NCBI GenBank assembly: GCA_946965045.2
Contig: OX337236.1
Span: forward strand, 2,480,001 to 2,544,000
DNA from: Epithemia pelagica
Taxonomy: Eukaryota; Protista; Bacillariophyta
Direction of reading: 5' to 3'
DNA length: 64,000 nucleotides
Below the pieces are notes generated by a model. It had not been told where the DNA came from and made no database searches. It was given only the letters and a program-made list of their open reading frames with translations. Within the stretch, counting starts at the first letter, position 1, and each line of letters starts with the position of its first letter. A program made the position numbers and the translations under genes. This document shows positions 36,201 to 54,900 of the stretch, one piece after another.

Positions 36201-36466
36201 CTAGTGCCTCGTAGCTGGAAGTGCCCAGGACGCCTAGTTTGTGCCCCATGGGCACAAACTTTAGCCACCTGTATCTTCATCAAAAAAGGTCGTATGACCA
36301 CATGCTGGGGCTCAATCTTGAGCCCGAAAGTGTCTTCTTTCGAGCGCCAACCACCCCATGGCACCAATCCTAGTAGGTATTGATCTAGAAATCGTTTTGC
36401 AAAAACTATTTTTGGTGTTGGGCACAACTTGGCACAGTTGGGCACAGTTGGGCACAGTTGGGCACA
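36201..36466 (+). repeat. Left TIR of piggyBac-like element, with inner 10-bp GGCACAGTTG repeats
   Basis: Matches the reverse complement of 42596-42850 apart from a few substitutions, one homopolymer length difference and 5 versus 4 inner repeats. Confidence 0.95.
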
Positions 36467-36956
36467 AGTTTCTTCTAGCTAGTTTCTGCTCCACCATCCA
36501 CCACCGCGACCAATCATGTCTGTTGTTATCTTCCTAAGACTAAGAGGACGTAGGTGCCATGATCCATGTTGCTGTTGTTGTCCGTTGGACTTGAATCGCC
36601 ATCCGTTATTGCACTCGTGAGCTCGTCTGCGCGCGCATCGGTTCATTTTTTGGCACGCACACCATTCGGAAGCATGAAGATACGCGGATCCGAGACGCAA
36701 CTCCTACGAGGGCTACGGACGAACGACGATGTTCATGATACAAACATTCCCTTTAGTGACTTTGACCATGCGATTTGATTCAAACAGAGTTTTCGTTCCC
36801 GGTAGCCGGCAGGCATCGTTGCTGAAGGAGGAGGAACAACACACAGCAGGACGATAATGTCACAATAAACCGGAGAGCGATATTGAGATCGTTCAGTGAG
36901 ATTTGTGGTTTGTTGTTCAGAGCAATCGAGAGAAAGAAAGTAAGTTATCGAGCATC

Positions 36957-39900
36957 ATGGCACCTAGTACGAAGCGTCTCGTCACTGGGTCGAAGGTGTT
37001 TGTGAAGAAGGGAAGTGTGCCTGCGGTCATCATCGGCCCAACGGCAAAGCATCAATGGGAGATCGAGTACGTCGATAAACTGACAGGATGCAACAACGGA
37101 AAGCGAGATACCAAATCGTCGCAGCAACTTCGTTGGCCCTATGTCAGTGAAGACTTCCCTGGTGGTGCTGGAGGCGGAACGATGACAGGATGTGGAACGA
37201 CGACAACGACGACGACAGGAGGTGGAACGACGACGACGACGACAGGAGGTGGAACGACGATGACGATGACAGGAGGTGGAACGACGACGACGACAACGAC
37301 AGGAGGTGGAACGACGACGACGATGACAGGAGGAGGCGGAACGACGACGACAGGAGGAACGACGACGAGGATGATGACAGGAGGAGGTGGAACGACGACG
37401 ACGATGACAGGAGGAGGCGGAACGACGACTACAGGAGGAACGACGACGAGGATGATGACAGGAGGAGGCGGAACGACGACGAGGATGACAGGAGGAGGCG
37501 GAACGACGACGACCGGAGGAACGACGACGATGACGACGACAGGAGGAGGCGGAACGACGACGACCGGAGGAACGACGACGATGACGACGACAGGAGGAGG
37601 CGGAACGACGACGACCGGAGGAACGACGACGACGATGACGACGACAGGAGGAGGCGGAACGACGACGACAGGAGGAACGACGACGACGATGACGACGACA
37701 GGAGGAACGACGACGACGATGCCTGGAGGAATGACGACGACGGCAGGAGGCGGAACTACAACTGCTGGAGGAACGACGACGATGACAGCAAGCGCAACGA
37801 TCGTGACAGGAGGAACGACGACAGCGACATTACAACGAACGACGACTGGAGGAATGTCGACAGGAGGAACGATGACAGGAGGCGAAACGACACCAGTGAT
37901 AGGAGGAACGACGACGATGACAGGAGGAACGACGACGACTGGAGGAATCATGGAGACAGGTGGAACGACGACGATGACAGGAGGAACGACGACGACAGGA
38001 GGCGGAACGACGACGACAACAACAACAACAGGAGGAGGAACGACAACAACGACGACGACAGGAGGAGGAACGACGACGGTGACTGGGGACCTGGTCGATG
38101 AGGAAAGTGTTGGTGCCGATCCTGATCCAACTTGGTACCAGGACACCAATCATGACGAAGTTGAGGATGGAATCCAAGAACAAGTGGTTCCTCATCATCA
38201 TGTTGATGATTCCGAGGATGAAGGCTTGCAGTTTGGGCATGAACTTGTTGAAGAAGACCATGGTGATACAATCAACATTGTTGAAGAGACGGAAGATATT
38301 GTGAACAATTTTGCTCTCCCTGAGGATGACAACGTGTTGGATCCAAACGGAGCAGCCCTTGCATGTGCCATCGAGATGGAACGTCAGAACGGATATCAAG
38401 AGAGGAAGGAGCGATACGAGCAACGACGAGAGGAGTTGATTGAGAATGGATGGACTGTGGAAGTCCAATCCGCACGGATGGGCATATCGATTGGTGATCG
38501 TGTTCGGGAAAATAAACGCAATCCGCAATTTGGAACTATGGTGGGGCAAATCCTTCCGGGTGAAGAGGGCAATGACACCCGTCGCAAACTCTGGACTGTC
38601 CTCTTCGACGGTAAACAATTCGCCGAACCAGGAATCTCCGGGACAAATCTTCGGAAGATCCATGACGACCGTGTCTTCACATGGAAGATCATGGAGGATT
38701 CCGAGCCCGACAACCCGGTGCCCCCAAAGGATTCAACAGGGATCATCGGTTACGATTTTGCCGGTGCATTCGAGGCCGACAATCTTTCGGCACCTCCAGA
38801 ATCATATAACTTTCCGTACATGAGATTGCTCATGCACATGTGGCCCGGTAGGTCCTGGTTGATTGATTTGATCCATGGGTTAGACGACGCAGTGACACTC
38901 ATCTTTGTTTGATTGTTGTGTATTACAGGGAGTTGGAAAAAACAACTCAACAACCTCAACGTTTACATCGACAAGAAGAACAACGAGAATCGGAAGAAGC
39001 GAAAGATGCGTCTCGTTTCTGAGAGCAAGTGGTGGAAAGTTTGGGGTGTGATGATTGGTGCATGCCCTGCGAACCACAGTGGAAAAAGTCTTTTCGAGAA
39101 GACACCTTCTCCCCGCAGGTTTGCACCAAAAATCAACCTAGGAAGCACCGGAGAAAATGCAATGGGAGTGATCTCCCAAGATCGCTTTGAGCAAATCAAA
39201 GCCAATCTGCATCACGCGTTTTCGGGGAATAAGGATGCTGACGACAAATGGATTGCCATCCGCCCTTTGATAGAGGGATTCAACGAAAACCGTCGTTGAA
39301 CTGTGGCATCTTCCAACAGAAAAGTTGCTGATGAGTGTATGAGCGCATTCCAGCCTCGTACAACTCCGGTTTCGAGCCTTCCCCATCTCACATTTGTCCT
39401 TCGGAAGCCGAAACCGCTCGGCACAGAACTCAAGGTATGGTCCTTCCTCTCTCTCCTGTCATGTTGCTTCTTGAAATAGCACACTCACCATCACTTCTTT
39501 CTCGCGTCTCACAGGCAATGGCAGATGCAGAGATTGGCTGCCTTACCTTTCTTGAGATCCAAGAAGGTAAGGAGTCCATGCGTAAACTCAAGTTTACGTC
39601 AGAAGCCGGCTCAGTCACGGCAGCCACCACACTCCGGTTGATTGAAGGGTCGGAGCAAATGACACAGGCTGGAGGAGATGAGCCTGATCGACACATCGTC
39701 TGTGCTGACTCATGGTTTGGGTCTGTCTGCATGGTGGAAGCACTGAAGTGCACATGGCAGAAGCCCAAGATCGCAACACCATCTGATCCCCGCAACTACT
39801 CACTGGAGGTGGACAAGCAAATGGGTAACAACCCCAATTCACCCGAGATTGTTTGCGCCGTCAAAACCAACACCAGTTTCTATCCGTACAACGAGCTTCT

Positions 39901-40933
39901 CGATGAAATGAAGGACTATCCTTCAGGCTCTTATTTGGTTTTGGGTTGTACGGCACCGGGCACCAACGTCAATTTACGCGCCATTGGGTACAAGTACAAC
40001 TCGACCAAGGTACTTCTGTTTCTCATGTCTCACAATGCGGGGACGACAGTGCCTGGTCGTCCATATGTCGCCCGTTTCCCCGACAGTCATGGAAATGTCC
40101 GCGAGCGTTCTGTGTTGCGTCCGAGCTGCCTTTCGAAGTATTTTGCTTGCTCGAATGTTGTGGACGTACACAATCAGTACAGGCAGAATCTCCTGGCTCT
40201 TGAGGAGATGTGGAAAACGCCCAACCCTTGGTTTTGTTTGATGACGACTGTGATTGGCATGACCGTTGTGGATTGCTTTCTTGCTGCCAAGCACCACAGG
40301 GGACAACTTCTCCCAACACAAACACTAAAACAATATGCCGATGCCCTCGCGTGGGATCTAACCAACAATACACTCCGCGACGACGCACACACCCCATCCA
40401 TTCAGACTCGCTCAAATATTGCTCCGGCCTCACTTGATGGACAGCCTGCTGGTGGATTGCTGGGTGCTCAGAGAGGACAAATGTCACCGACAGAATTGTC
40501 GAACTTACTGAGACAATGGGCATTGTTGTCGGTGTCTCCAACGGACTCCTCGGTTGGGGATGAGGAATCCTTGTTCTGTTTCCCCTGTCCTGGAGGGGAA
40601 GACAAGGAGAACAGCAACAGCAGAATCAACAGTGGTCCCGAGGACCACCATTATCATTATGTTGTTCCCTTCGATGAAACAACAACGGACAGTGACGGGA
40701 GGGTGCGTTCTTGCAATCGTCGTTGCGTCATTTGTGGAACGACAACGCGCATGATGTGTGCACACCCGAAATGTCGTGCTGTGACAAAGTTTCGTAAGGT
40801 CTCGGGAAAAGACGAAATAAAGGAGATTCGAGGAGTGGGCTTGTGTGGAGGAAATAGAGTCCGTCCAGGTCAGCGGCATCCGTGTATTGAGGTGCACCGT
40901 CAAGCCTGTGCTGCTGCTGAACAAGAATCGTAA
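36957..40933 (+). pseudogene. piggyBac-type DDD transposase, three exons, one in-frame stop
   Basis: Introns 38848-38928 and 39435-39514 give a 1272-codon frame with one TGA at 39297. Motifs ADECMSAFQPRT, RKPKPLGTELK, CADSWFGS, VDVHNQYRQ and a C-terminal Cys-rich domain. Confidence 0.9.
37185..38085 (+). repeat. Mosaic (ACG)n/(GGA)n trinucleotide repeat encoding about 300 aa of Thr/Gly/Met
   Basis: Direct reading of the sequence. The frame stays open through the whole tract. Confidence 0.95.
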
Positions 40934-41139: not shown

Positions 41140-41643
41140 CTACTCCTTGTTTGTCCAGGTTTTCAATGCATGATCAATTGACTGAATTAATGCAACTGAG
41201 CTGACCACGCGCATTTTGATGGTGATGGTCATGGGCTCCATTGAAATCAAGGTGTTCAGAGAATGGCTGGTTTTGATGACAATTTTGCCTTTCACCGTCG
41301 ATCCACTGGGTGAAGACACAAGGGTTGATTTTAGCGTGTTTGTAACAGAGGCTATGGGAATGACAAGATCCGGGAGATGATCGTCCTCCTTTCCGCGAGC
41401 GTATCCCCGGATGGAGATTGCGTTTTTGTTCTTGTCGCATGAGAAGGACCGCTGGACAAGAACAACACCACGATCAACAATCAAACGGCCATCATATCCA
41501 TCATCACTGTGCCCAGGCTTCAAGTAGATATTCACACCTGAGTCTCCAAAGATGGAAACAGCAAAACCCTGACATTGGAGTGTTTGCCCATCATCACGTC
41601 GCGTTGTGAAGTGTTTGGGTAGGTGATGAATATCCTCCTGCAT
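41140..41643 (-). CDS. Small beta-rich hypothetical protein, passenger of the piggyBac element; homolog of 46487-47059
   Basis: 167-aa ORF collinear with the 46487-47059 product (IVDRGVVLVQR / IVDRGHLLVQR; MEPMTITIKM / MEPQVVTIYM). A GTAAGT...CAG intron (41721-41650) lies just upstream. Confidence 0.75.
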   Translation of the reverse strand: MQEDIHHLPKHFTTRRDDGQTLQCQGFAVSIFGDSGVNIYLKPGHSDDGYDGRLIVDRGVVLVQRSFSCDKNKNAISIRGYARGKEDDHLPDLVIPIASVTNTLKSTLVSSPSGSTVKGKIVIKTSHSLNTLISMEPMTITIKMRVVSSVALIQSIDHALKTWTNKE

Positions 41644-41960
41644 TTTGAACTGAAGCAAATTTGTGAGTTGCAGTCATCAGCATATTCCAAGGGTTCCAGA
41701 GAATCAATAGAAGTGACTTACCAGAGAAAGCAGAATTGTTCGAGTTGAGATGTGATCGTTCAAGGTTTTGTGTCGGATTGTTGTATCACCTTGTGTCTTG
41801 TGTGTGATTTGCTATGGTGCGCCATAATCTGCATCCAACAAGAGCGCGGTGCGCGTTCATGTGTCACACTTCTTTTGCACTCGTGACTGTTTTCCCTCGT
41901 CCTCTCGATCACAAAACAAGAAATCAGAGAACAAAGGAGACCATCACCAATTACCTCACC

Positions 41961-42491
41961 ATGTCTGAAATTGTCAATGGCCGTCGTGTGAGCTTGCGCA
42001 ACAAGAACAAGCGCATCCATCTGCCTGACCAGTATGGTGATGCCTTGTCAGCCCAACGCAACTCTGCACCCATCTTTACGAAACCAAGGAAGAACACGGC
42101 GACAAAGAGCAAGACAACAAAGAACAAGACCTTGACGCTGAAGAAGGCATCACAGAAGACCGCAGCTCGATCCAACAGAGAAGGGGCTGTGGAAGTGAAG
42201 AAGGAGAAGAAAGCGGAAGTTGCTTCCTGCGGACGAGTCTCATTTGGCAAAGCGGATGTGGAAGTTCTGTTTCAAGGTGACGACGACAATGAATCGATGG
42301 CAAGCAAACCAGCCATTGCAGGAAGCAGCAACAAAGAAAACAACAACTCCTATATGGAGATTGAAGACATGGAGCAAGGTCACAATCGAAAGAGTTTTGC
42401 CAGCTCTGTTGGTGTCGAAAGCAACCTCTCGTTTGAATTTGCTGAGACACAACAAGACGCTCCGGAGTTGTACTTCAACATCATTGAGTAG
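41961..42491 (+). CDS. Basic, Lys-rich hypothetical passenger protein, divergent from 41140-41643
   Basis: 176-aa ORF from ATG 41961; basic N-terminal half, acidic tail, RVSF motif. Confidence 0.6.
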   Translation: MSEIVNGRRVSLRNKNKRIHLPDQYGDALSAQRNSAPIFTKPRKNTATKSKTTKNKTLTLKKASQKTAARSNREGAVEVKKEKKAEVASCGRVSFGKADVEVLFQGDDDNESMASKPAIAGSSNKENNNSYMEIEDMEQGHNRKSFASSVGVESNLSFEFAETQQDAPELYFNIIE

Positions 42492-42595
42492 AGCCCTTAA
42501 CCAAATCTCTAGCTCTCTATTCACTTTGACATTGTTCTCTATCTAGTTGCTCATTAAATGGATGTCTTCTGGAGCCATAATGCGATGAAACTGTT

Positions 42596-42850
42596 TGTGC
42601 CCAAGTGTGCCCAACTGTGCCAAGTTGTGCCCAACACCAAAAATAGTTTTTGCAAAACGATTTCTAGATGAATACCTACTAGGATTGGTGCCATGGGGTG
42701 GTTGGCGCTCGAAAGAAGACACTTTCGGGCTCAAGATTGAGCCCCAGCATGTGGTCATACGACCTTTTTGATGAAGATACAGGTGGCTAAAGTTTGTGCC
42801 CATGGGGCACAAACTAGGCGTCCTGGGCACTTCCAGCTACGAGGCACTAG
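42596..42850 (-). repeat. Right TIR of piggyBac-like element
   Basis: Reverse complement of 36201-36466. Confidence 0.95.
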
Positions 42851-43552
42851 ACTCTAGAGGGAGGTAGCTCCTCTAGAGAGGGGTACTTTCTGCGTTCGAC
42901 TACCTAGCTAGAGTGGACCAAAGAGAACTCAGAGACTAGGTAGTGGTCCAATCTGAACTCAGTCGAACATACGAGTAGATCTCCTAATTGATAGAACAAA
43001 AGATAAGCACCACATCGATCAAAAAGAACTCCTATCGGAACTATGGATAGAACGACTGCATGTAAACCCAATGACGGATGTGTCATGGAGAGGCAATGTC
43101 ACCGCATTACAGAAAAACTGTTGCAAGAAAAGAGATCACGATTCTTTTGCATGTTCCAAGATTCCAACGAAAACCTCGGCACTGGTTTTGTCCACTACAA
43201 CGTCGCCGTCGCTTTCCGGGACAAGCAATGGCATGAATCGGCCCTGAGCCAAAGCAGTAAAATAAAGCACCAACTGAACAAAAATTGCATGCTGGCTCGC
43301 TCCTCCGTTCACTCACCCATTGTGAAAATCTTCGTAACTGACTGTTCGTCCTTTTGTCAAAATTTGGGCAGGAAAGAGTGTACACAGACACTCTTCCAAG
43401 CCATGAGTTGTGCTCTTCTACAAACTTTTCTACACAACAAACGTATTGCAGTGCGGAGTCCTCAATCTGTAAGATTTCATCTCGTTTGACCAAGGACAGG
43501 TTCAATTCCATCTGTTTTCATTAGGGACAACGCTCATGTTGCTGAGTGACCA

Positions 43553-45406
43553 TCAGTCTTGTTCCGTTTTACTTTTTTCCTCGATTTCGAGTGTGAGGAC
43601 GAACTGTCGCATCGAAGATCGAACTCGTTCCTTTTCCTGTGCACTGATTTGAGGGACAGGCTTCACGGTGCCACTCCCCTGCACTCTCCGCCGTTTTCGG
43701 TTGATCGAGGCAGCGTCGTCACCAGACCAGCTGAAACTTTGAACGTAGAACCAGTCTCTATCAAATCGATCAGGTGGGACGCAAAAAACATGCGCGAAGT
43801 CATCACCCGGAGAAAGACCGTACACCCCACGCTGACGGATATACTCTCGTCCGGAGACGGAATGATTCGCCTGCAGTGTTGCGTTGAAACCAAGATCACT
43901 CCCAGCCATCCCATCAAAATTGCTGTAACCATCAGGAGGCAGCAAAAGAATCTTGTTTGAAGTCAGCACATTGTTGTTAAATGACATACCCTTCCCGCAT
44001 TCAGCAACTTTGGCCTCAAAAGCTTCGTTGCTTGGGGCTTCCTCGATTTTGTCGCTTCTCCCACGAAAGACGCACGTTACAGGTGGTGAAACAGCTTGTT
44101 GCGAAGATCCTTGTGCCTCTTTTGCGCGCGGGCGACTTACTAGCTGTTTGCAGCGAATTTTAATACCGAGTCTCTTCATTCCTTCGGTGCCTTGCGCCAA
44201 GTACACTAGAACAACTCGTTCAAAAGCTAGACCGATATCCGACGCATCATTTGAACCTCTCCAGCGAACATCTTTGTGTATTTTATTCAGGAGAATTTTC
44301 CCAATAGCTCTGACTGCTCCTGGCGAGACAAAGTCTAGCGTCGCGTACCGTCGGGTTGGATTGTAACCATTCTCGTCCTCTCCCGCGCGTATTGTGAAGA
44401 ACCGGGTCACGACTTTCTCGGTGCTGGCATCGTTAAAATCCTTTCCCTCCGCCAAGGCACGCAGCAATACCTGGCTATATTTGTCAGCATTTTCAGCTGT
44501 GATCTCGTCCATGCGATCGTTGACTTTGCCCGCGGAGAGGTAGCGAGGTAGCCCGCCGACAACATAATAGTTATCCATCATTGCCGTCATTGTGGCCACA
44601 TACAGATCATTGTCTTGTTCGTAAACACGGCCCGGGTTTCTGTATAGCATATACGGGAATGCTACTTGTAGTTGCTTCAAAGACCAGGGTCCAAGGACCA
44701 GCTGACAGTACACGGATGACGTCTTGTGGGTACCACCAAGGTGGCGATCATCGGGAGAAACAGGAATGAAACAATGACCTTTCGACGCAGAAACCAATAC
44801 CAATGGCGACGGCTGTGTGTCCTTAGAAAACTGCGCTGGATCGACGACGATATCAATGATTCCACATTCCACCCAATCATCGGGGACCTCGTTGAGTTTT
44901 AATTTGAAGACGGCCCACTGCTCGTTTGAAGACGAAGGCGGCATAATGAGCAAGGTCTTGCGTTTATTTGGGGATTGGCCGAATTCAAAAATAATTGGCC
45001 TTCGCTGCTCCGATTGATGCATGAGCTTTCGAATGTAAAGCAACAATGACCAGCTCTTTCCGATTCCAGGAGACCCTCGGACGGAAACGGTCACGCCACG
45101 CTTCGACAGGTTCTCCCGAGATACCTTGAAGGCGTAGTCAACCACGTCTCGCTGCTCTTTACGAGTAACAAGGTGAGGGGAGGCATTGCTATCGTCTAGA
45201 AAATTGCTTTTCAGAGGAATAACCTCAATCCCCTCAGACAATGCTTGTGGCTCTGCGGTAGCGAGCCCTTTGAATTTAGCCGTCAAGGCCGCATCTGCTG
45301 TCCACACCGTCTCGTCCACAATAGGTACTTCCTCCTCCGCTGCCTCTTCAAATTCTGCCAGATCAAGAAAGGGGAGACCTACGTGTAGATTCGGGTCCGC
45401 TGCCAT
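43553..45406 (-). CDS. Crinkler/RHS-like P-loop NTPase with C-terminal restriction-endonuclease-like region
   Basis: Walker A VRGSPGIGKS; LGPWSLKQL; YYVVGGLPRYL; C-terminal GLAFE...PDGYSNFDGM...FNATL pattern. Intronless, 617 aa. Confidence 0.7.
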   Translation of the reverse strand: MAADPNLHVGLPFLDLAEFEEAAEEEVPIVDETVWTADAALTAKFKGLATAEPQALSEGIEVIPLKSNFLDDSNASPHLVTRKEQRDVVDYAFKVSRENLSKRGVTVSVRGSPGIGKSWSLLLYIRKLMHQSEQRRPIIFEFGQSPNKRKTLLIMPPSSSNEQWAVFKLKLNEVPDDWVECGIIDIVVDPAQFSKDTQPSPLVLVSASKGHCFIPVSPDDRHLGGTHKTSSVYCQLVLGPWSLKQLQVAFPYMLYRNPGRVYEQDNDLYVATMTAMMDNYYVVGGLPRYLSAGKVNDRMDEITAENADKYSQVLLRALAEGKDFNDASTEKVVTRFFTIRAGEDENGYNPTRRYATLDFVSPGAVRAIGKILLNKIHKDVRWRGSNDASDIGLAFERVVLVYLAQGTEGMKRLGIKIRCKQLVSRPRAKEAQGSSQQAVSPPVTCVFRGRSDKIEEAPSNEAFEAKVAECGKGMSFNNNVLTSNKILLLPPDGYSNFDGMAGSDLGFNATLQANHSVSGREYIRQRGVYGLSPGDDFAHVFCVPPDRFDRDWFYVQSFSWSGDDAASINRKRRRVQGSGTVKPVPQISAQEKERVRSSMRQFVLTLEIEEKSKTEQD

Positions 45407-46486
45407 AGTTGTCTTTGATTGTTAAGATTCGGTACAACACAACGTTCGACGACCCTTGTCTCACCCTGCATTAGGCTATCTCCACCCGAGCGCCGCTATG
45501 CTGACGTATCGGGGCTTTATGATTGGCCTCACTATCCGGATAGCGGCTTAGCGCTTAGCGGTGCAAAAGGAAAATGAACTCCAACCAGGGACACCTATGA
45601 AATTTGTAGCCAAGGAACAATTTTGTTGTTGACCCTAATAGGCAACAATGCCTTTCGACGATAGGTTCAAGCGGTTAAGTTGACGACTAGAGGCATCGTC
45701 CTTACGATAGGTAACCTAGCAAAATGGTTTTATTAAATAAAAACTACTATGGACAAAATAATAGAAGCTACGACATAATTTTCGTGTCGCAAGTTCTTTT
45801 TTTATGTCCGAAGAATGTATCGATACACTGATCCCTCCGACTAGGTGTCCGCTTCTTACAAGCTGAGTTCAGACAGAATGTTCCTGACGTAGCGCTCCAG
45901 TAGGAAATCTACGTAATCCGCGCGAGCCATCCCCTTAATATAGCCCTTCTATTTATGCCTCTACCGTTCTACCAAAAATTGACCATGGTGAACGGTCCTT
46001 TTGACCGATCTCTTGCCAAATAGGAGACGGCTCCATGATCCCATGCTCTGAACCTCTTCTCCATTCATGGGTTGAGCATGGAGAACGATGTCGGCGCTGC
46101 ATTCGTTTTGTAGGTGTCGTTTTATCTAGTTGAAGGTGGTCGCCGCGCGATTTACTACGGCGACTCACGGCAAAACTTGGTGCAACCAATGCACCTCTAT
46201 TGTAGAATCGAATGATAGAAGATAGAAGAAAGACTATGAACACTTGTAGCGTTGTTCACGTCAAAAATTGATATTCTTCTCGTTAGATATATGGAACTTA
46301 GACTAGAAGTTGCGTCGTTCACAACAAAGATTGATGTTCTTTTCTTTGTTGTGACTCACACAGCCGTACCTGAACGCAATGTATTGTACGGTAAACGTAA
46401 CACAACTATAGAATTAGATCGTATTCATAGAGAATGAAGATCCTACTCAAATGATAATCATAAAACGCTGCTACATTGTTCACTAT

Positions 46487-47059
46487 CTAGGCTTGTTGAT
46501 GATTAAAGAAGAGATTTTGAAGCGGGTGCTTGAGCATCATCGCACCAAGCGAAATGTTGAAGCGATCCATATCCTTGCTGCCCATGTAGATTGTAACGAC
46601 CTGGGGTTCCATGCAGGCTTTAGGGTTGATGGAGCAGCGTGTGTAGAGGCGGATGCGTCCCATGGGAGGTCCGTTCTTGCTCGTCTTTCCAGAGACCTGG
46701 TCCAGGTGCGACAGAGCAATGAACCCAACTGGAACAACCAACGCTGGTTCCTCATGCTCGCTTGTTGCATCCCGGTCAAAGACTGCAATCCGTAGGTAGT
46801 CGGTCGCAAGCTCCCGCTGCACAAGCAGATGGCCACGGTCGACGATGTTGTGGCCAGTGTCCTTGTTTCTCGACATGGGCCCGATGAGCGCGCAAACATC
46901 GCTGGCATAAAAGCACGACTTGAACGGGAGACCAGCACCACCCTCACGGCCATCCTCTTCGTTGAACTCGAACTTCGTCCTCATGTTGGTCATCTTGTTT
47001 CTTCTTCCTTGCCTCTTCCTGTCGTCTCTGTTTGATTGTTCCATTGCACGGCGGGTCAT
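46487..47059 (-). CDS. Small beta-rich hypothetical protein; homolog of 41140-41643
   Basis: Collinear motif conservation with the piggyBac passenger. Start could be any of four ATGs. Confidence 0.75.
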   Translation of the reverse strand: MTRRAMEQSNRDDRKRQGRRNKMTNMRTKFEFNEEDGREGGAGLPFKSCFYASDVCALIGPMSRNKDTGHNIVDRGHLLVQRELATDYLRIAVFDRDATSEHEEPALVVPVGFIALSHLDQVSGKTSKNGPPMGRIRLYTRCSINPKACMEPQVVTIYMGSKDMDRFNISLGAMMLKHPLQNLFFNHQQA

Positions 47060-47230
47060 TCGGAAGTTGCTTCATGCTGCAAGTTGATTTTGTGGCGCGC
47101 GCCGATATTGTTCACGAATGAGCGCGGGGGGATTCCCTAGATGACACAAGAACGGAGAGCGGGCAACAATCAAACAAACAAACACAACAATCAAACGAAC
47201 GAATCCCTATTGTGTTCTCACTTTCCAACG

Positions 47231-48128
47231 ATGCGCCAGACGCGTAGTGCTACCAAACGAGCTGAGTCTGCGAAGAAGGAGCAGGAGGACTCCGCCGCAG
47301 CTCCCTCCACAACCGCATTTCCCTCCGACAAGGGAAACAAGGCAAACAAGAAAATGAAGACAAAGACGGCCGTGGACAACAAAACGTCGAAGAAGAAGAA
47401 GACGACGACGACGAAGTCTCCCGCTTCGACAAAGAAGCATGTGACCTTCAACCTTGAGGGTCCTTCGTCGTGGCACGAGCGCGCAAAACAGTGGCAACTC
47501 ACCATTGGGGATGAAGATGGTATCCCAGTGTTCTTCGTCAGCAACAAGGACGTCGAATGCGCTAACCTGTTGGATATCGCGGCAGAGCTCCTTGCGATCG
47601 AGGCTGTCGGCAAAGAAGGTAAGTTTGATTGTTCATTGTTGGTTTTGAGTCTCCCTTTCTCACGACGCGCCCTCTGCTGCCACAGACACCAAACCCAACA
47701 GCAAGCCCGACAACAAGCCCGACAGCAAGCCCGAGAAGGAGATCAAGAAGGAGGACGACGTCGAGAACAAGACTCCAGAGTCTTATGTGACCCCGAAGAA
47801 AGTAACTTCTTCCCCGAAGGTGGCGTCTCGAGCTTTCGCACTGACCCCCTCACAGAAGCATGCTTTCCAGCGTCGGATTGCTGAGGAACAGGTGAAGGAA
47901 AGTGGAGCGACAGACCCTCGCCAGACTTTGAATGAGTCGCTGGCATTGGGAGAAAACATCCCGTCGTCTCCTCCTTTGTTCTTTAGCAATCCTTCCCGTG
48001 CATACCGGACATCCATTGATTCGTATGCCGATGATGGATTTCTCGAGACCCAAGAAGACTTCATCGGTACGCAGCAAAACGGGCTTTTTGGTCCCGATTA
48101 CTTGGATCATGAGGACGAGGCGTACTAG
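47231..48128 (+). CDS. Basic, Lys/Thr-rich hypothetical protein (276 aa, two exons), divergent from 46487-47059
   Basis: Intron 47619-47685 (GTAAGT...CACAG) joins ORFs 47141 and 47787 in frame. KHVTF motif. Confidence 0.7.
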
Positions 48129-48654
48129 ATATCTACTGATGGACGTTTTAGGTATCCTTAATCACTAAATATGAATCGATTTGTCATCATGGTACTTGTA
48201 GTGCTTCTACAGTCGTTCTTGTTGTGATTATCATTATTGTCGTCGTCCAAGTCCTCGTCATTGTCGTGGCTATCATTGTCGTCGTTGTATTGTAGTCGTC
48301 CTTGTTGTAGCTATCATCGCTCATCCCGTTTGTCCTCTTCATCATCGTTATGGTCGTGATTGTCATGGTCATCATCATCGTCGTCGTCGTCATCCAGCTT
48401 CCCAGTGTCGGTAGTTGGGTCCCGGTTTGCGGGCGCGTCTCGTATGGATGTACGAGGGAGTTCGTGATTGGTCCCAGACGAGCTATGATTCTTATCTCAT
48501 ATTTTGCGTTTTCGACACTTCATGGAAACAAACACGACAATGTACTAAAGTATAATATGAAGGAATAAACTAATAAATCTTAATGTCATACTGCAACTCA
48601 ACGTACCATGGTATTCTTTTTCAACAATAACACACTTTCACCACGAGGAAAGAT

Positions 48655-51513
48655 CTAAGTTTGATCGGCTTCTTTGCTCGCGATCTTCTTACCAGGTTTA
48701 TAATTCGCGGCCACAAGCACCTTACGAGGATTGTCACTTAGGACGCAAACACGCTTGTCCCCGACCCAAAGCTTAACCCCAACGAGCCCACTTCGGCGAA
48801 CACCAGGGATGTCTTTGTCATGGAAGTAGTAGTCGGAAAGCCTGCTTTCTCCAGAAGGAAGGTTGTAGGTGTTCTTTGGCATGGGATCGTGAACGGTCCC
48901 ATCTTTTCCTTGGTACACGTAGAAATGTGCACGTGGATTCCCCATCTCCCCAGTCTTAAAGCCACCAGCATGGACAGTATCTCCTCGAACGAGGAGAAAC
49001 GTGCCATATGGGATATGTACCACTTTACCCAGCTCGTTCATATAATCCTTGTGCTTCTCACCGCGGAAACTCCACAATTCAACGGACATACCCTCCTCCG
49101 CCAGGGGCATGAAAACAATAAAAGGCATGCGTTCCCGGAGTGGCAGATCTGCATTTGCTCTCCGAGTCTTTTTGATTGGTTGCTTCCCGGAGGGCGTTTT
49201 GGGACCTTCGGACATGTTCCCTGTTACGCTCTGGAACAAGAAGTCGATGTGAGGTTCTTGAACTTTTGCCTCTGTGGTCTTCATGAACGAAAGGTGAATG
49301 TTGATTTGGTCCGCAAATGAATCATCTTTTGCGTAGTTCATCCCATAGAGAGCTGAGGCAAGCAGCTGCTTGAAATTGGCCGTGACCTTTGCAGCATGTT
49401 TGGGGTTAACGTGGCCGAAGTACCGAATGTTGGACACCATTCCCTCATGTTCCATCATTGCCATCAACAAATTTGGTGTGTAGTCTTGAACAGATTTGAA
49501 AAATTTGCCCTTTCCTTTCTGGTCCAAGCCTGTGCTGTGCCACGCATTCTCCAACATTTCGAGGAGATCTGGCGGAGTTGTCAAAAAATATCCTCGATAC
49601 ATTTTGTTTTCAATATCGTACAGCCATTTGAAATACTTCGAGCGCAATTCTCTATGTAACAACTTCATTTCCTCGAAACGCTCATTCTCCTTCGCTTTCG
49701 CATCGATCGCTTCCATCTCCTCAAAAATACTATCCGTGTCATCTTCTGCCATTACCACTGGTACGAACATTCCAGTACTAGGGCTGGGATTGGCTTGAGT
49801 GGCGGGTTGAGCTTGTGCTGCAGGTAGGACGGGACTGCTGGGAAGGAGCACGGGTTGAGCTTGTGCTGCAGGTGGGATGGGATTGCTCGGAAGGAGGTGG
49901 GGTGAGCCTTCGACCGGCTGGGTCGTGCGTTGTTGTTGCTGCTGATGATGGAGCGATGAAGGTAGAGTCCCCCCGTAACCTCCATAGTTGGGTTGATTGT
50001 AGGACGGAGGATGTCCATGGTACTGCGGCGGAGGATGACTCGTCGGAGGATGAGGATAATGCGGCGGAGGATAAGGATAATGCGGCGGAGGATGATGATT
50101 GTACTGCGGCGGAGGGTAATTGTACTGCGGCGGAGGATAATTGTACTGCGGCGGAGGATGGTGATAATATTGCGGAGGATAATGCGGCGGCAGCTGAGGG
50201 GGCGAATTGTAGTGCTCAGAAACGTCTTGCGGAGGAGGCGGAGAAGGAAGAGCAGGAGGACGAGCAACAGCAGCAACTGGGCGGAAAACAGTAGTAGAAG
50301 AGGTAGCGAAAGCCTTCTTTGTTTTTTTCCCGTCGTCTTCATTTTCATCACTGGGTCGACCGCGTTTCTTTCCCTCGTCTTCGTCGTCGTCACCTTTCGT
50401 CGACGGTCGGATAACCTGTTCGGAGGACGTCGGCGATTCGTCCGAAAGGTTATAAAACAAAGACAGCTCGTCGCCCTTTTCGATCCGCTTGATTGCCTTG
50501 ACTAGAAGATTCGGCATGATTCTCACGTTGTAATGATCATCCGATTCATCCGGTGGATTGTCTGTACCGTACCGATGGTGTAGGTGGTCGTTGATTAAGT
50601 GCAGCCCCATGCCGAAGTGATCGTCGTTGTCTGCTTGAAGCCTTCGATTGTCACGTCCGAACTGAATCGCGTACTCGTTGGGTACAACTGTCCGAGACGT
50701 GACGTCGTTTCCCGTGTACGCACCAATCACTTCACCATCTTTGATTGTCCGAGCTGCAAAAACACCAAACCCGGCGCCTGGGAGTTTTGACTCCTTCACC
50801 TCAAACAGAAGCACTTTTCCAAGGTAGATCTTGACTACCGGATTGTTCGCAAATGTGTAACCGACATGCTTGCCGATCGGGAAGGTATGTTTTCTGTTCT
50901 TCTTGACAGGGAGACCCATTCCACTCGAAAGTGGCACAATCTTCCCCTTTTGCATGCCAGAACCGGGCTTCCGAATTGGAGCTTCTTGGACCGAAAAAGT
51001 GGCCGAAATCTTCCGTGAGACATACTCTCCCATAGCACAGGCAAGTACAGCACTGTCTTTGATCTTGGAGAGCGTCTTGAGGCCTTCGGTGAATTTCCTG
51101 ATTGGATCCCGTCCAGAACGAGAAGGGAGTTTCTCCACTTCCTCGATGCCTTTCTTGTAGTCCTCTGTGCGCGTATCGATGAGGAGCTGCCGCATTTGAG
51201 TTTCCGAATACTGTTTGCTGTGGTCCTTCTCTGGATGGCCACGCCAAACATCTGCAAGCTTTTTATCCTTCACTTCGGCAAAGTCTTGATCCGAAAGAAA
51301 CCGATGGTGCTTTGTTGTTGTCGCTTCGTCTGTTGCTGCTGCTTCGGGTGCTGCGGCTGCTGCTGCTTCGGGCGCCGCTGCTGCTTTGGCTGACTGCTCT
51401 TCCGCTGCATCTATTGCAAGTATAAGAGCGTCAAGATTTCCTTTGTCACTCATGCTGTCTCGTTTTTGAGCGCCTGCTTTTGAATACTGTTTCTTAGGGC
51501 TTGGTTTCCCCAT
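48655..51513 (-). CDS. SET domain + Pro/Tyr/His linker + 2OG-Fe(II) dioxygenase-like fusion protein
   Basis: SET (~50450-50810): EVKESKLPGAGFGVFAARTIKDGEVIGAYTG...LHLINDH...AIKRIEKGDELSLFY. Dioxygenase (~48900-49330): QEPHID, DTVHAGG, NPRAHFYVY. Intact intronless ORF. Confidence 0.8.
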   Translation of the reverse strand: MGKPSPKKQYSKAGAQKRDSMSDKGNLDALILAIDAAEEQSAKAAAAPEAAAAAAPEAAATDEATTTKHHRFLSDQDFAEVKDKKLADVWRGHPEKDHSKQYSETQMRQLLIDTRTEDYKKGIEEVEKLPSRSGRDPIRKFTEGLKTLSKIKDSAVLACAMGEYVSRKISATFSVQEAPIRKPGSGMQKGKIVPLSSGMGLPVKKNRKHTFPIGKHVGYTFANNPVVKIYLGKVLLFEVKESKLPGAGFGVFAARTIKDGEVIGAYTGNDVTSRTVVPNEYAIQFGRDNRRLQADNDDHFGMGLHLINDHLHHRYGTDNPPDESDDHYNVRIMPNLLVKAIKRIEKGDELSLFYNLSDESPTSSEQVIRPSTKGDDDEDEGKKRGRPSDENEDDGKKTKKAFATSSTTVFRPVAAVARPPALPSPPPPQDVSEHYNSPPQLPPHYPPQYYHHPPPQYNYPPPQYNYPPPQYNHHPPPHYPYPPPHYPHPPTSHPPPQYHGHPPSYNQPNYGGYGGTLPSSLHHQQQQQRTTQPVEGSPHLLPSNPIPPAAQAQPVLLPSSPVLPAAQAQPATQANPSPSTGMFVPVVMAEDDTDSIFEEMEAIDAKAKENERFEEMKLLHRELRSKYFKWLYDIENKMYRGYFLTTPPDLLEMLENAWHSTGLDQKGKGKFFKSVQDYTPNLLMAMMEHEGMVSNIRYFGHVNPKHAAKVTANFKQLLASALYGMNYAKDDSFADQINIHLSFMKTTEAKVQEPHIDFLFQSVTGNMSEGPKTPSGKQPIKKTRRANADLPLRERMPFIVFMPLAEEGMSVELWSFRGEKHKDYMNELGKVVHIPYGTFLLVRGDTVHAGGFKTGEMGNPRAHFYVYQGKDGTVHDPMPKNTYNLPSGESRLSDYYFHDKDIPGVRRSGLVGVKLWVGDKRVCVLSDNPRKVLVAANYKPGKKIASKEADQT

Positions 51514-51924
51514 GGTCGAAACGCAAAAACTCGAAACACGAAACACAAGAAACACGAAACGCAGCATTCTCCTCAGCCCTCAGCTCACATTCCAAAAAAA
51601 AATCTTGAGCTCACATACTAAAAAACGGTGAAGTTTTGGTATGTGGGCTGAGTTACTTAAGGATTTGCGTGCCAGTTTTGCGATGCGTGCGCGTTTTCGG
51701 AGAGGGAGGCGTGTTTCGCGCGAGGTCTGCTCCGAAAATCGTCCATTTTCTCGCTCTCTCACATTTTCGAGGTACTTACAAACTGATAATCCAACACGCA
51801 ACACGAGCACGCAACACGGAAGTGATCATTGATACCAATAACTGACAAGAAATACATTCAATAAAATGGATTGCTGTTATAAATAGTTAAGTTACATGCA
51901 TTTTGATGATAAATGGAGATTAGA

Positions 51925-54900
51925 TCAGGTTTCTACTGCACCAGATCCTTGCGTTTCTCTCCAGAGACGTGAGATGAAGCCATGATCTTGGTCGAAGGCG
52001 GATCGGTGACACTTGATTGCTTTTGACATCTTTTCAATTTTGGCATACGAGAGGCCCGCAGCTGCATAGTCTCTGTTGTTGGAATTTTGATCGTATAACA
52101 AGTACGCGAGCATATAGCGACGTGCCTTTGCTGACATTTTCCGCATGATTTCGGGTGTTGTTTTCTTCAGGCTCGCTGTCAAACATCGTAAAAAGGCAGC
52201 TTTGTCTTTCTTCTCATTCAGTGAGAAAGCACGAAAGACTTTTTTTGAGTAACCCCAGCCATACTCGATCCCCTCACCGGCCATTTCACAGTGATACTTG
52301 GTCGATACGAGAATCTCGATCCTGCAACGATGTCGTTCAGACAAGTCTTCCGCCAGCTTCTCCATTGCAGATTTTTCGTTCTTGAAATCGGAGCATTCGC
52401 TCATCAGATGAACCATAGAGTACTTTTTGTAGTCCGCCTGATAGGCTTCTTTCACAGTCTTCTTATCCGCTTCCAACCATGCATCTCTGGTTGTCTTGAC
52501 GTACTTGATCATGTTGTTAGGGTCTATCCACCCCCGCTCCCATAACACTTGAAAGAGCCCTTTTGCAGCATTCATCCAGCCTTCCTCGATCACGTCATCT
52601 TCAATCACCGTTGCAATGTTGGAGCGTTTACAAAGGTCCTGTAGTTCACCAGCATTTTTCGATTGAAATGAACGTTGCATTCCAGGTCCCATGACCCGGA
52701 CAAGTTTTGCCATGAGCTCCTTCTTTGTGAGGTTGCGCTTTTTCTTTCTACCAGTTCGGTGTGTATTCTTCGATGCGACACGCTGCGCGTCATTGAGACG
52801 ATGGCCTTTTTTAGCAACTGGACCACGATCGTTCTCCTGATAGACGAGGTGTTGTACGTCACCAACTCGTAGTTTGTCGTCATGGTTGTACGGGCCAAGG
52901 CAAGCTTGATCAATAATTTGTGTGTCCCGCATGCTGGGAACAGCTCCTCCCCAGTCGTTATTCATGTTCAGAGCATTTAACCCATCGGATTGTTGTTTTC
53001 CATGACCACTGCTTTGGTCGAACAAAAAGACAAAGTCATGGGCGGGGAACATGACCACGAGGCAATCGACAATATCCTCCAACTGCAAGGCCATGTATTC
53101 ATAATTCCAATATCCCTCTTTATCTGCTCCGTATTCAAAAAAGCGAGTGAACGGTTGGGCATTGGTAATTGGAGTCTTGGCAGTGTGACCATTGAGGTTC
53201 ACTGCAGCCTCGGTAGAGACGTATTTGTTGTGTGTCGCATGTAGACGGAGTTCATTAATCCGAAATAGACTCGCAGCAAGCAACGGGTTTCCGTTCATAA
53301 GGAAGCCCCATGATCGGCTTACAAAAGCGCTGATCATCATCCCATGTCCATCATCCTTTGGCAGCATTTTAGTTGCGCCATCTTTAGTGTACCATGCCTT
53401 AGACGAGAAGGAAAACTGCTTGTAGATCGATTCGTCCTGGCCGATGAGGATGACAGGTTTGCGGTCGGAGGGAAACCTGTGTGACAAGTTTCCATTGTGA
53501 ATTGTGTTTTCTGGTTTGATGTACCGTTCAAATTCGCTTGGGAAGGCATCAACATGGTACTCCCGCATCTGCTTGCCTGTTGTTACATCAGTGTACTCAA
53601 ATACAAAGCTGTTTGGCAAGAGCTTCTCCTTGCCCGCATTCCCTTCGTTTTCAAGTTTGATTGCATCCTCGGTAGGGAGCTGCACCCACCGATACGACAG
53701 CTCTTCCCACTTAAAGTACTTCTTGACAAAAGCAGCTCTGTGGGCAACATTCTCAGCATTTTCGTGTCGATCAGTGAAGTATGTTTTCGTGTGTTCCTTG
53801 AACACGAGCCCTGCAGCAGCAATACATCGCCACGCTGTGCTTTGCGAAATGGTGGAAAGCTTCATCGATGCCAAGAAGGCCTCGTACGATACTGGCGTTG
53901 CATTCGTATCCATGCACTCTTGTACGATCATGGTATGCATATCCGGAAGCAATGTTGTCCTCAGGTACATTAGAGCAGACTCTGTTGTAAGAGTGCTCAG
54001 GTTTTCCTTTGCCCAGCATTCAAACTTTACCTTTGCTTCAGGTATGTGAACGAATAAGACGGGCGATGGCTCTTTCCCAATATGAACGTGGTAGTTGGGA
54101 TGAGGGAAACTGTCGTTTTCCCGAAAGTACCTGTGAAAACGAGCAATGGTCTTGGGATGTTTTTTTACTTTTTCACCATAAATCTGTTCCATTTTGCTAA
54201 TGGCTTCGCTTATGCAGTTCAGCCATGTACGACCGTGTGGCATATCAAGCAACGCTATCTTATAAGAAAGTTGTAAATACGTTGCCTTGAGCAGTACCCT
54301 CTGTTGCTGTTCCTGGTTGAGGGGGAAGATGTCTCCCTTGTTAACCACATTCGGAAGTGCCTCCACGTTGGAAATGGCCCTTTCAAGGGTTTCTATCCAT
54401 CGCTCAAGATTTCGTTTTGACGATCCTGGAGAATCGCATTTGCCGGCAAAGAGCCTACGGTTCCTTGGCTCATCAAAATAGGCGCTTTCCATTTGTTGCG
54501 ATAGACCTTGGATCATCTCACTCTCGAAAAGTGAAAAACCAATCGGCAAACTCTGTGGATGGTCATGGCCGATTTCGTCTGTGGCCAATTCAGGATGTTG
54601 GATTGCTCCAACAAGCACCTGATTTGTGTTGTCGTGAGGTGGTGACGTTTGCATTTCGGTAGGGCTGTCTCCAATTTGTGGCGGTTGACCATGTTGCTGC
54701 GTTGCAGTGCTCTTGATTGCTGGTGGAGTTGAAGTGTTTCTTGCTTGCTTGGATGTATTTAGCGTGCCTTCACGCAACCCTGGTGACTCTTCGTTCCTTC
54801 GCTTCGTTGGCTTCGCTCGTCCCGACCGCCGAATCACATTCTCGGCTGCAGCCTCCAGCCATTCTTGATGATCGTCCAACATCACTGGCCCTGTTGTTGT

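Follow-up and report, generated by a model that had tools for sequence, protein, structure and literature searches.

PIF/Harbinger elements stably carry a Myb-like second open reading frame (ORF) beside their transposase, and fungal KDZ-type elements carry TET/JBP genes. To our knowledge, few accessory genes have been described from eukaryotic DNA transposons, each of them bound to a single superfamily. Extra ORFs are also found in the Tc1/mariner-type TBE elements of Oxytricha (PMC12242761). The VANDAL elements of Arabidopsis (Mutator) encode VANC, an accessory protein thought to shield its element from host silencing (PMC10398659).

The stretch of Epithemia pelagica DNA analysed here (64,000 nucleotides, referred to as the window) contains two transposons, elements A and B, that carry a conserved accessory module. 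This module consists of a PH-like gene and a Lys-rich gene in divergent orientation, often together with a SET/2OG-oxygenase gene, and is common to a CTAG-flanked piggyBac lineage and a TA-flanked Tc1/mariner/IS630 lineage. As in PIF/Harbinger and TBE, cut-and-paste transposons here stably carry additional protein-coding genes, but the accessory genes of those elements (Myb/SANT and zinc finger/kinase, respectively) are restricted to a single superfamily each and encode domains unlike those of the diatom module. KDZ elements share with the diatom elements a gene for a chromatin-modifying enzyme inside a DNA transposon (here SET and 2OG oxygenase), yet in the diatom elements the enzyme is accompanied by the PH-like/Lys-rich pair, and two superfamilies carry the complete set. 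The likeness to VANC is that both are accessory genes, unneeded for the chemistry of transposition, and core genes of a lineage that co-evolve with their element. VANC, however, binds DNA motifs of its own element sequence-specifically and is found in one superfamily only, whereas the diatom module has a different fold, no sequence similarity to VANC, consists of a gene pair present in two superfamilies, and has an anti-silencing role only by hypothesis. The link across superfamilies is new.

Elements A and B and their transposases

Element A is a divergent piggyBac-type transposon of 6.65 kb with 257-bp inverted ends and CTAG on both flanks (Table 1). Its transposase (TnpA) is encoded in three open pieces (36903–38912, 38913–39299 and 39335–40933) which are probably joined by introns. 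A Pfam scan of the transposase ORF gave no direct match, but a six-frame family search found PF13843 at 39168–39386 (28.9 bits, above the threshold of 22.4), and the transposase homologs in L033, L034 and L041 match the same family with 29.5 bits. As only positions ≈75–160 of the model for this catalytic domain (DDE_Tnp_1_7) could be aligned, element A is regarded as a divergent member of piggyBac; there are also weak matches to canonical piggyBac loci in the same genome. The C-terminal part of the protein (the ORF ending at 40933) is Cys-rich, as read by eye without a model score. Element A meets the piggyBac criteria of catalytic domain, terminal inverted repeats and, by eye, Cys-rich C-terminus, but not that of a TTAA target-site duplication, since the flanks of the one copy inspected are CTAG. 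CTAG and TTAA are both palindromes of 4 bp but differ in sequence.

Element B is 9.7 kb long, with ends at 45857 and 55578, and is present in at least 24 recent, near-identical copies. The TA-CAAGCTGAG boundary is identical in 24 copies with unrelated flanks, and the TA target-site criterion of Tc1/mariner/IS630 elements is met at both ends. Its transposase (TnpB) has no direct match in Pfam, and a PDB sequence search did not give any match either. BLASTP linked it to the protein P0159 (E 3e-17 and 6e-9), whose aligned C-terminal block matches PF13358 (DDE_3) with 39 bits. The best matches of the predicted structure (pLDDT 90) were Mos1 (Z 13.3), SETMAR (13.1) and Sleeping Beauty (12.4), with integrases (10.7 or lower) and Hermes (6.2) further down. 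Three alignment columns, D612, D751 and E995, are invariant and were inferred to be the catalytic triad. The protein can be taken to contain a DDE_3/mariner-type catalytic domain, on evidence that is indirect but consistent.

That the two elements belong to two unrelated DNA-transposon superfamilies had been claimed in the original prediction, and is supported by the PF13843 match for element A (piggyBac) and by the TA flanks, the PF13358 link and the Mos1, SETMAR and Sleeping Beauty matches for element B (Tc1/mariner). Two further claims on the arrangement proved right for both elements: the PH-like gene is head-to-head with the Lys-rich gene, and the cassette is placed at the element end far from the transposase start (cassette 41140–42491 with the start near 36.9 kb in element A; cassette 46487–48128 with the start at 55269 in element B). 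The account has to be corrected with respect to orientation, as the cassette points the opposite way in elements A and B when the transposase is taken as reference. The region 41644–41960 is presumed to be a promoter shared by passA and lysA, its function being inferred. A further correction is that lysB contains a conserved 67-nt intron, with its signals retained in subfamilies B2 and B3. The 617-aa ORF at 43553–45406 was excluded from both elements. A third, hAT-like superfamily beside a clade-X member of the PH-like family (locus L037) could not be established, as it is suggested only by a weak language-model lead and by motifs read by eye; a PDB sequence search with the L037 ORF gave no match.

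Table 1. Features of elements A and B, with positions in the window.
Feature	Position	Strand	Remarks
Left terminal inverted repeat, element A	36200–36456		Arms I1 and I2, 99–100% complementary; CTAG at 36201–36204 just outside the TGCC... terminus
Transposase gene, element A (divergent piggyBac)	36903–40933	+	PF13843 match; homologs in L033, L034 and L041
passA, PH-like accessory gene, clade A	41140–41643	-	167 aa; convergent with transposase
Divergent intergenic region, passA/lysA	41644–41960		Bounded by the two start-codon positions
lysA, Lys-rich partner	41961–42491	+	176 aa; RRVSLRN N-terminal, FAETQQD C-terminal; homologs in L034 (44% identity) and L033 (29%)
Right terminal inverted repeat, element A	42596–42851		Inverted repeat pairing; CTAG at 42847–42850
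Left end, element B	45857–45903		Begins TA then CAAGCTGAG...; inverted repeat pairs with 55532–55578
passB, PH-like accessory gene, clade B	46487–47059	-	190 aa; same strand as transposase
Divergent intergenic region, passB/lysB	47060–47230		Promoter function inferred
lysB, Lys-rich partner	47231–48128	+	Exon 1 47231–47618; intron 47619–47685 (GTAAGT...CACAG); exon 2 47686–48128
SET/2OG-oxygenase fusion gene, third accessory gene of element B	48655–51567	-	PF00856 SET match
Transposase, element B, Tc1/mariner/IS630-type	51925–55269	-	1114 aa; start at 55269
Right end, element B	55532–55578		Terminates ...CTCAGCTTG then TA

The PH-like family is confined to cut-and-paste transposons in this genome

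Both passenger ORFs were verified (passA, 41140–41643, minus strand, 167 aa from the first ATG in a frame open to 41658; passB, 46487–47059, minus strand, 190 aa). BLASTP aligned their products with 34% identity over 98 residues (E 6e-10), and the Smith-Waterman score of 98 is significant against 2000 shuffles (28.3 ± 4.5, maximum 51; z 15.4). At the DNA level, blastn found only chance matches of at most 18 nt between the two cassettes. Both the homology of the two products and the lack of an evident DNA repeat between their genes had been proposed beforehand, and on these alignments passA and passB are confirmed as true homologs.

The AlphaFold model of the PH-like protein (pLDDT 79, pTM 0.73) contains strands at residues 46–61, 70–83, 89–94, 107–110, 114–122, 133–140 and 153–160 and a C-terminal helix at 161–177, which meets the definition of the PH-like superfold (a seven-stranded antiparallel β sandwich with a C-terminal α helix). 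All top PDB matches of the model are PH-like (RanBD, EVH1, TFIIH p62 PH, Dcp1, pICln and Vps36 GLUE; Z 10–11), with an rmsd of ≈3 Å over 100–120 residues and an identity of only 7–15%. The suggestion of a PH-like fold in the original prediction is thus borne out by the predicted structure. Ran-binding domains were the top matches in Foldseek, but membership of this subfamily could not be upheld, as the Z score of 11.0 ties with EVH1 (11.1) and p62 PH (10.8) and there was no Ran_BP1 match in Pfam. The superfold is common to the transposon family and to RanBD, EVH1/WH1, TFIIH p62/Tfb1 PH, Dcp1 and Vps36 GLUE, but there is no match to the peptide-binding PH-like domains at the sequence level, and no single subfamily stands out. 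Pfam at E ≤ 1 gave only a marginal PH_10 match in 2 of 11 family members, and neither the Pfam scans of both passenger proteins and both partners nor a PDB sequence search with the passenger profile gave a match. As far as we can judge, neither RanBD nor EVH1 has the invariant motifs of the family (V-D-R-G..L.Q-R, P.L.IP and M-E-P..T). passA and passB represent a single small family, unnamed until now, whose members are single-domain proteins (≈120–270 aa) with a PH-like fold. The fold alone is no indication of a particular ligand.

About 90 members of the family are found in the genome (85 and 96 genome hits), and the ORFs are intact at nearly all of these loci. Only 45 representative protein clusters were found out of 1.84 billion, all of them small single-domain proteins. 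A tnpA homolog is located within 2.5 kb, in convergent orientation, at 33 of ≈40 clade-A loci (a context based on coordinates only), whereas subfamily A8, with three copies, is without a transposase. In clade B, a tnpB homolog accompanies the gene in every subfamily with a scored transposase candidate; it is on the same strand and usually 3–8 kb off. The reverse pairing (clade A with tnpB or clade B with tnpA) does not occur at any locus in the genome. Nor was any unlinked host copy of the gene found in it, and the finding that would have refuted the original prediction, homologs that are mostly host genes unlinked to transposons, was not seen.

Clades A and B are each monophyletic (support 92/97 and 99/100, respectively), and the divergence of the passenger follows that of the transposase with a rho of 0.99 in lineage B and 0.61 in lineage A. 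Between subfamilies dN/dS is 0.05–0.40, with synonymous sites near saturation, in line with the earlier view that the gene is maintained by selection. The module is co-inherited with the transposase in each lineage, down to ≈40–50% protein identity, under purifying selection, and behaves as a core gene of the element and not as a recent capture. The same architectures are present in other assemblies, and metagenome scans for further contexts found none.

The idea that a two-gene cassette has been exchanged between transposon families is supported, with caveats. The PH-like gene is present in both, and from the single monophyletic clade per superfamily we infer that the module crossed between superfamilies, or had its transposase swapped, once and long ago. 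The exchange itself remains an inference, as the data are explained just as well if the module stayed in place and the transposase next to it was replaced, and homology of the two Lys-rich genes is based on shared short motifs only.

The Lys-rich partner and the SET/oxygenase gene

The partner proteins are rich in Lys, with both Lys and Arg abundant, and look largely disordered. No significant global similarity was found between lysA and lysB, and a comparison of A-type and B-type partner profiles with hhalign was not significant (E 0.14), its top alignment being the same C-terminal motif that is seen in the individual sequences. This motif, F-x-(E/D)-T-Q-(E/Q/D), was found in all 8 partners compared, which represent clades A, B and X (shuffle probability ≈1e-3 or less), and reads DDGFLETQED in lysB, which was searched exon by exon and not as a joined protein. 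A second motif, RR[STV]x(1-2)R[LNSI], occurs within the first 30 residues of 6 of 10 partners (shuffle probability ≤1e-3 each), with a variable spacing of the third Arg; the RRxSxR motif is lacking in the lysB of the window, in subfamilies B1 and B3, and in L033 and L037. As the motifs were defined after inspection of the sequences, these probabilities are optimistic. We know of no counterpart to the F-x-E-T-Q-E/Q-D tail.

HMGN, tardigrade Dsup and yeast Dot5 are likewise small, Lys-rich and apparently disordered, and the C-terminal tail of HMGN is acidic like that of the partners. The N-terminal motifs of many partners (such as RRVSARL, RRSNRL and RRSSRN) are close to the acidic-patch anchors RRSARLSA, RRSSRLTS and RRSARIAT of HMGN, Dsup and Dot5, and overexpression of Dot5 disrupts silencing via its Arg motif (PMC12487698; PMC13347269). 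Globally, however, the proteins are not homologous, the third Arg is variably spaced, and nucleosome binding of the partners is only inferred.

Neither lysA nor lysB is similar to the transposase of its own element, and no similarity was found between the PH-like proteins of the window and the transposases. The ORF that faces the passenger in subfamilies A2 and A3 resembles the Cys-rich C-terminal region of the transposase, a hint that the role may concern the DNA ends of the element itself and not host chromatin. The L037 partner has a stretch in common with the N-terminus of the adjoining large ORF.

A SET/2OG-oxygenase fusion gene joins the PH-like/Lys-rich pair in many subfamilies. Homologs of this gene (41–46% identity) adjoin elements of clades A6, A7 and A4, so that it is found with both superfamilies.

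Proposed function of the module

As one module serves two chemically unrelated transposases, its most likely target is the host and not the transposition reaction. Our main reading is that the elements share a module acting on host chromatin through the PH-like protein and a nucleosome-bound partner. We give this a probability of roughly 0.6; the function is inferred, there are no functional data, and expression has not been shown. The partner would have an HMGN-like design, with the N-terminal RR(S/V/T)x(1-2)R(L/N) of many members, a Lys-rich middle part and an acidic tail with the F-x-(E/D)-T-Q-(E/Q/D) motif, and might by inference be bound to nucleosomes. Peptide binding is proposed for the PH-like protein because the folds it resembles (RanBD, EVH1 and p62-PH) all bind peptides; it may recognise a short linear motif, for which the conserved C-terminal motif of the partner would be the likeliest target, although binding data are lacking. 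The pair, together with the SET/oxygenase enzyme where present, could then maintain permissive chromatin at the element or in its neighbourhood, or could alternatively tether the element to chromatin. The first of these outcomes, anti-silencing, is a hypothesis by analogy and is supported only indirectly, by the HMGN-like motif of the partner and the co-carried SET/oxygenase gene.

A rather unlikely alternative is that the pair is a strict transposition cofactor, comparable to the second (Myb-like) protein of PIF/Harbinger and involved in nuclear import of the transposase or in assembly on the element ends. A RanBD-like fold and an NLS-like Lys-rich partner would serve nuclear transport, and the partners are indeed rich in Lys and Arg; the RanBD match, top-ranked by Foldseek, is nevertheless no better than those to EVH1, p62 PH and Dcp1. 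The A2/A3 ORFs resembling the transposase C-terminus and the shared stretch of the L037 partner could point the same way, but lysA and lysB have no such similarity to their own transposases. Presence of the module in all members of both lineages is what an essential gene would show, yet with two transposases whose DNA-binding and catalytic domains are unrelated, a specific protein-protein or end-binding role would have needed to re-evolve.

It is even less probable that the pair regulates its own element by controlling copy number or repressing transposition, as truncated repressors do in other DNA transposons. The tight and stable linkage of module and transposase would suit such a role, and so would the transposase-derived Cys-rich ORFs at the partner position in A2 and A3, although the PH-like protein and the partners of the window lack similarity to the transposase. 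A repressor is not expected to be common to superfamilies, and element B reached its at least 24 near-identical copies with the module aboard. Finally, DNA transposons do capture host fragments and the PH-like family has no domain recognised by sequence, but the view that the genes are neutral hitch-hikers of this kind, or that their similarity reflects chance or low complexity, is already contradicted by the alignment z score, the dN/dS values at near-saturated synonymous sites, the intact ORFs, the confident PH-like model, the conservation in other assemblies and the absence of an unlinked host copy in this genome.

That selection maintains one module in two superfamilies whose transposases are unrelated speaks for a function at the transposon-host interface. 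A more specific form of the chromatin reading, which we hold only tentatively, is that of a portable, transposase-independent chromatin-interface module, made up of a PH-like adaptor and an HMGN-like nucleosome binder, often with the SET/2OG-oxygenase enzyme. In diatoms it would have changed from one transposase superfamily to another, or exchanged its transposase, and would act as a counter-defence against host silencing. If true, no earlier anti-silencing system would be common to several DNA-transposon superfamilies, and none would have been described before in stramenopiles. The presence of the module in two superfamilies is a natural experiment in which a function at the host interface is separable from the chemistry of transposition, and the PH-like family and the tail motif of the partner are new handles on protein interactions. 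The control of transposons in diatoms is poorly understood, and as these elements are recently active, compact and found in a diatom-like alga, the pair is directly testable for effects on silencing.

Homology, selection and fold of the passenger genes

The passenger genes passA and passB, carried by the piggyBac-type element A and the Tc1/mariner-type element B, respectively, encode products that align collinearly, as the original prediction had it, with 34% identity across 98 residues (BLASTP, E 6e-10). Their Smith-Waterman score is 98, against 28.3 ± 4.5 for 2000 shuffles (maximum 51; z 15.4). No DNA-level repeat had been noticed between the genes, and blastn of the two regions likewise gave only chance matches of ≤18 nt. 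Judged from these comparisons, the likeness is real, confined to the protein level and ancient.

Coordinates of the features described (window positions; C-numbers are contigs of the same genome)
Feature	Position	Strand	Details
Element A inverted repeats	36200-36456 and 42596-42851		~257 bp, 99-100% complementary
Element A transposase gene	36903-40933	plus	three open pieces
passA	41140-41643	minus	167 aa from first ATG
lysA (Lys-rich partner gene, element A)	41961-42491	plus	
Element B	45857-55578		47-nt inverted ends
passB	46487-47059	minus	190 aa
lysB (Lys-rich partner gene, element B) intron	47619-47685		67 nt, GTAAGT...CACAG
SET/2OG-oxygenase fusion gene of element B	48655-51567		
Element B transposase	51925-55269	minus	1114 aa
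A2/A3 loci with transposase-like facing ORF	C1:3942369-3942731, C2:3418740-3419102, C4:1655993-1656358 and similar		
A8, clade-A-like, three copies	C9:2404689-2405132, C13:2988667-2989110, C4:1072306-1072749		~45% identity, one in-frame TAG

Between passenger subfamilies, dN/dS (Nei-Gojobori) was 0.40 for B1 vs. B2, 0.23 for B1 vs. B3 and 0.28 for B2 vs. B3. Comparisons including contigs from other assemblies gave 0.20 (B1 vs. L031), 0.05 (A1 vs. L034) and 0.13 (L034 vs. L033). Synonymous sites are at or near saturation in the deeper pairs. The passenger gene has been under purifying selection along the active lineages, in agreement with the earlier claim that it is kept under selection.

The AlphaFold model of the passenger, built from an 11-sequence alignment (pLDDT 79, pTM 0.73), has seven strands and then a C-terminal helix. 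A PH-like fold had been proposed, and both Foldseek and an exhaustive aligner matched the model to PH-like domains only: Ran-binding, EVH1/WH1, TFIIH p62 PH, Dcp1, pICln and Vps36 GLUE (Z 10–11, rmsd ~3 Å, 7–15% identity). No single PH-like subfamily stood out structurally among these matches, and there was no sequence-level match. The predicted structure supports a PH-like fold, but not membership of a named PH family.

A PH-like gene family in two unrelated transposon lineages

Both termini of element A abut CTAG, in a TCTAGA context (36196-36209 and 42842-42855; one copy seen), and not the TTAA expected at piggyBac flanks. In a six-frame search, PF13843 (piggyBac DDE_Tnp_1_7) matched 39168-39386 at 28.9 bits (cut-off 22.4 bits), spanning only part of the Pfam model; transposase homologs in other assemblies match at 29.5 bits. 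The C-terminal piece of the transposase also shows a weak match to canonical piggyBac loci in the same genome. Element A is a divergent piggyBac lineage, given the partial PF13843 match and the CTAG flanks. The N-terminal piece of its transposase contains a Gly/Thr-rich low-complexity coding repeat of ~900 bp with several frames open (37190-38100).

For element B, similarity among 24 genomic copies (L001-L024) starts at an identical base, TA followed by CAAGCTGAG, while the flanks are unrelated. The window copy closes with the mirror of the CAAGCTGAG end and then TA, the duplication typical of Tc1/mariner elements. The transposase matches nothing directly among Pfam families or PDB sequences; of its 111 relatives in the databases, those furthest removed carry PF13358 (DDE_3). 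Both catalytic blocks align with one of these PF13358 carriers, P0159 (E 3e-17 and 6e-9), the second at the position of its DDE_3 match (39 bits), and across 39 aligned relatives the D, D and E columns are invariant. For residues 540–1060, the AlphaFold model (pLDDT 90) best matches the Mos1 catalytic domain (Z 13.3, rmsd 2.5 Å, 162 residues), followed by SETMAR (catalytic domain, Z 13.1) and Sleeping Beauty (12.4). Z is at most 10.7 for retroviral integrases and 6.2 for Hermes. Since element A has PF13843 and element B the TA duplication, the DDE_3 chain and a Mos1-type model, the two belong to different superfamilies, as originally proposed.

Nucleotide diversity among the 24 copies of element B is ~0.004–0.005 at the left end and passB vs. 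0.04–0.09 in lysB and downstream (equivalents of 45857-48559). This suggests sub-lineages with a homogenised or recombined left end in common, though a few divergent copies may inflate the figures. An intact 617-aa ORF on the minus strand between the elements (43553-45406) has no Pfam match and no further copy in the 24 element B flanks; it belongs to neither transposon.

The gene order of element A is transposase (+), passA (−), lysA (+) and right end. Read in the orientation of its transposase, element B has transposase, SET/oxygenase gene, lysB (opposite sense), passB (same sense) and end. In both, the PH-like and Lys-rich genes are head-to-head with a gap of 171–317 bp at the element end distal to the transposase start, an arrangement correctly foreseen, and the whole pair is flipped relative to the transposase in element A vs. 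element B.

In the genome (60.5 Mb, 23 contigs) the two proteins matched 85 and 96 loci, nearly all with intact frames, forming ~16 subfamilies, many of which have several identical copies. An element A transposase homolog lies within 2.5 kb of 33 of the ~40 clade-A loci, convergent in every case. Every clade-B subfamily with a scored transposase candidate has a same-strand element B transposase homolog, usually 3–8 kb away (13–19 kb in a few copies). The opposite pairing did not occur among the genome loci. Passenger identity to the window copy rises with that of the neighbouring transposase (rho 0.99 in lineage B, 0.61 in lineage A). The exceptions without a detected transposase are some fragments and the three-copy subfamily A8, which may be a non-autonomous element or have a different carrier. 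An unlinked single-copy host version was not found in this genome.

Word-based searches with the two proteins recovered no more than 5 and 4 proteins. When a profile was run exhaustively against 1.84 billion representatives, 45 clusters scored E ≤ 1e-3, all small single-domain proteins from ENA, JGI or Logan assemblies. Both architectures recur on long contigs of other assemblies: L032 repeats the element B set (transposase 60%, SET/oxygenase 70–84%, lysB 38% and passB 59% identity), and partner, passenger and piggyBac-type transposase occur together on L033, L034, L040 and L041. In a maximum-likelihood tree of 41 members, clades A (support 92/97) and B (99/100) are separate groups; several additional clades come from short metagenome contigs. 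Both transposon lineages, although unrelated, carry the new PH-like family as a stable component under selection.

On L037 (2-2808; 5073-7420), a passenger of the further clade X and its partner lie 3.3 kb from a 755-aa ORF, whose likeness to hAT was judged by eye and has only weak language-model backing; the N-terminus of this ORF has a stretch of ~35 residues in common with the partner. This may be a third superfamily with the gene pair, but is only a lead. On L031 (9831-10738; P0003, P0010, P0026), a clade-B PH-like domain has an 80-residue Lys-rich N-terminal extension including TRSSRLLS, immediately downstream of a fragment like element B transposase residues 36–77; it may be a fusion or deletion derivative.

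The Lys-rich partner

The PH-like gene is always divergently paired with a fast-evolving Lys-rich gene that keeps a conserved tail motif. Partners diverge faster than passengers (e.g., 50–56% identity where the passenger has 79–80%), and global similarity between lysA and lysB is not significant. The lysB intron puts a conserved second exon back in frame, and its splice signals are kept in B2 and B3 with a variable interior length; similarity searches used single exons, not the spliced protein.

All eight readable partners (clades A, B and X) have an acidic, serine-rich C-terminal stretch with [F/I]-x-x-T-Q-[Q/E/D], e.g., FAETQQD, FLETQED, FEDTQD, FMATQE and IAETQDF (shuffle probability 1e-4 to 6e-3 each). 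The best hhalign alignment of A-type and B-type partner profiles is exactly this stretch, without being significant (E 0.14). Within 30 residues of the start, 6 of 10 partners have RR[S/T/V]x(1-2)R[L/N/S/I] (RRVSLRN, RRVSARL, RRTSKRL, RRSNRL, RRSSRN and RRVLRS; shuffle probability ≤1e-3 each); it is absent from the window lysB. Both motifs were defined post hoc, which makes the shuffle probabilities optimistic. The N-terminal one is similar to the motifs that anchor HMGN (RRSARLSA), Dsup (RRSSRLTS) and yeast Dot5 (RRSARIAT) to the acidic patch of the nucleosome; overexpression of Dot5 disrupts heterochromatic silencing via its motif (PMC12487698, PMC13347269).

Past the Lys-rich region, the A1, B1 and B3 partners have [R/H]-V-[S/T]-F (lysA GRVSF, 42372-42386; lysB KHVTF, 47438-47452), resembling PP1-docking RVxF sites by sequence alone. 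A KEN tripeptide is kept in A-type partners (lysA NKEN near 42470).

A shared module and its possible role

In A4, A6 and A7, SET/oxygenase homologs (41–46% identity) are found at most a few kb from clade-A passengers and piggyBac-type transposases, and B4 also has one; the window element A has none. Up to three genes are therefore shared between the two superfamilies as a module. The data fit a jump of the module between superfamilies and a replacement of the transposase beside a fixed module equally well.

We infer host chromatin to be the most likely target of the module, because it is common to two unrelated transposases and a chromatin-type enzyme often comes with it. The partner would bind nucleosomes and the PH-like protein would read a short motif, probably the partner tail, resulting in silencing relief or chromatin tethering. 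The main rival is that the gene pair is a transposition or nuclear-import cofactor. Its one supporting observation comes from A2/A3, where the ORF that stands head-to-head with the passenger matches the cysteine-rich C-terminus of the transposase (residues 396–523, 47–48% identity); in these subfamilies a transposase-derived domain appears to take up the partner position or to be fused to it.

We found no description of this module in the literature on diatom transposon cargo, PH-domain accessory proteins or anti-silencing accessory genes. Its genes belong to a known category, transposon accessory genes, but the protein family is unnamed. To our knowledge, the sharing of such an accessory module across transposon superfamilies has not been reported.
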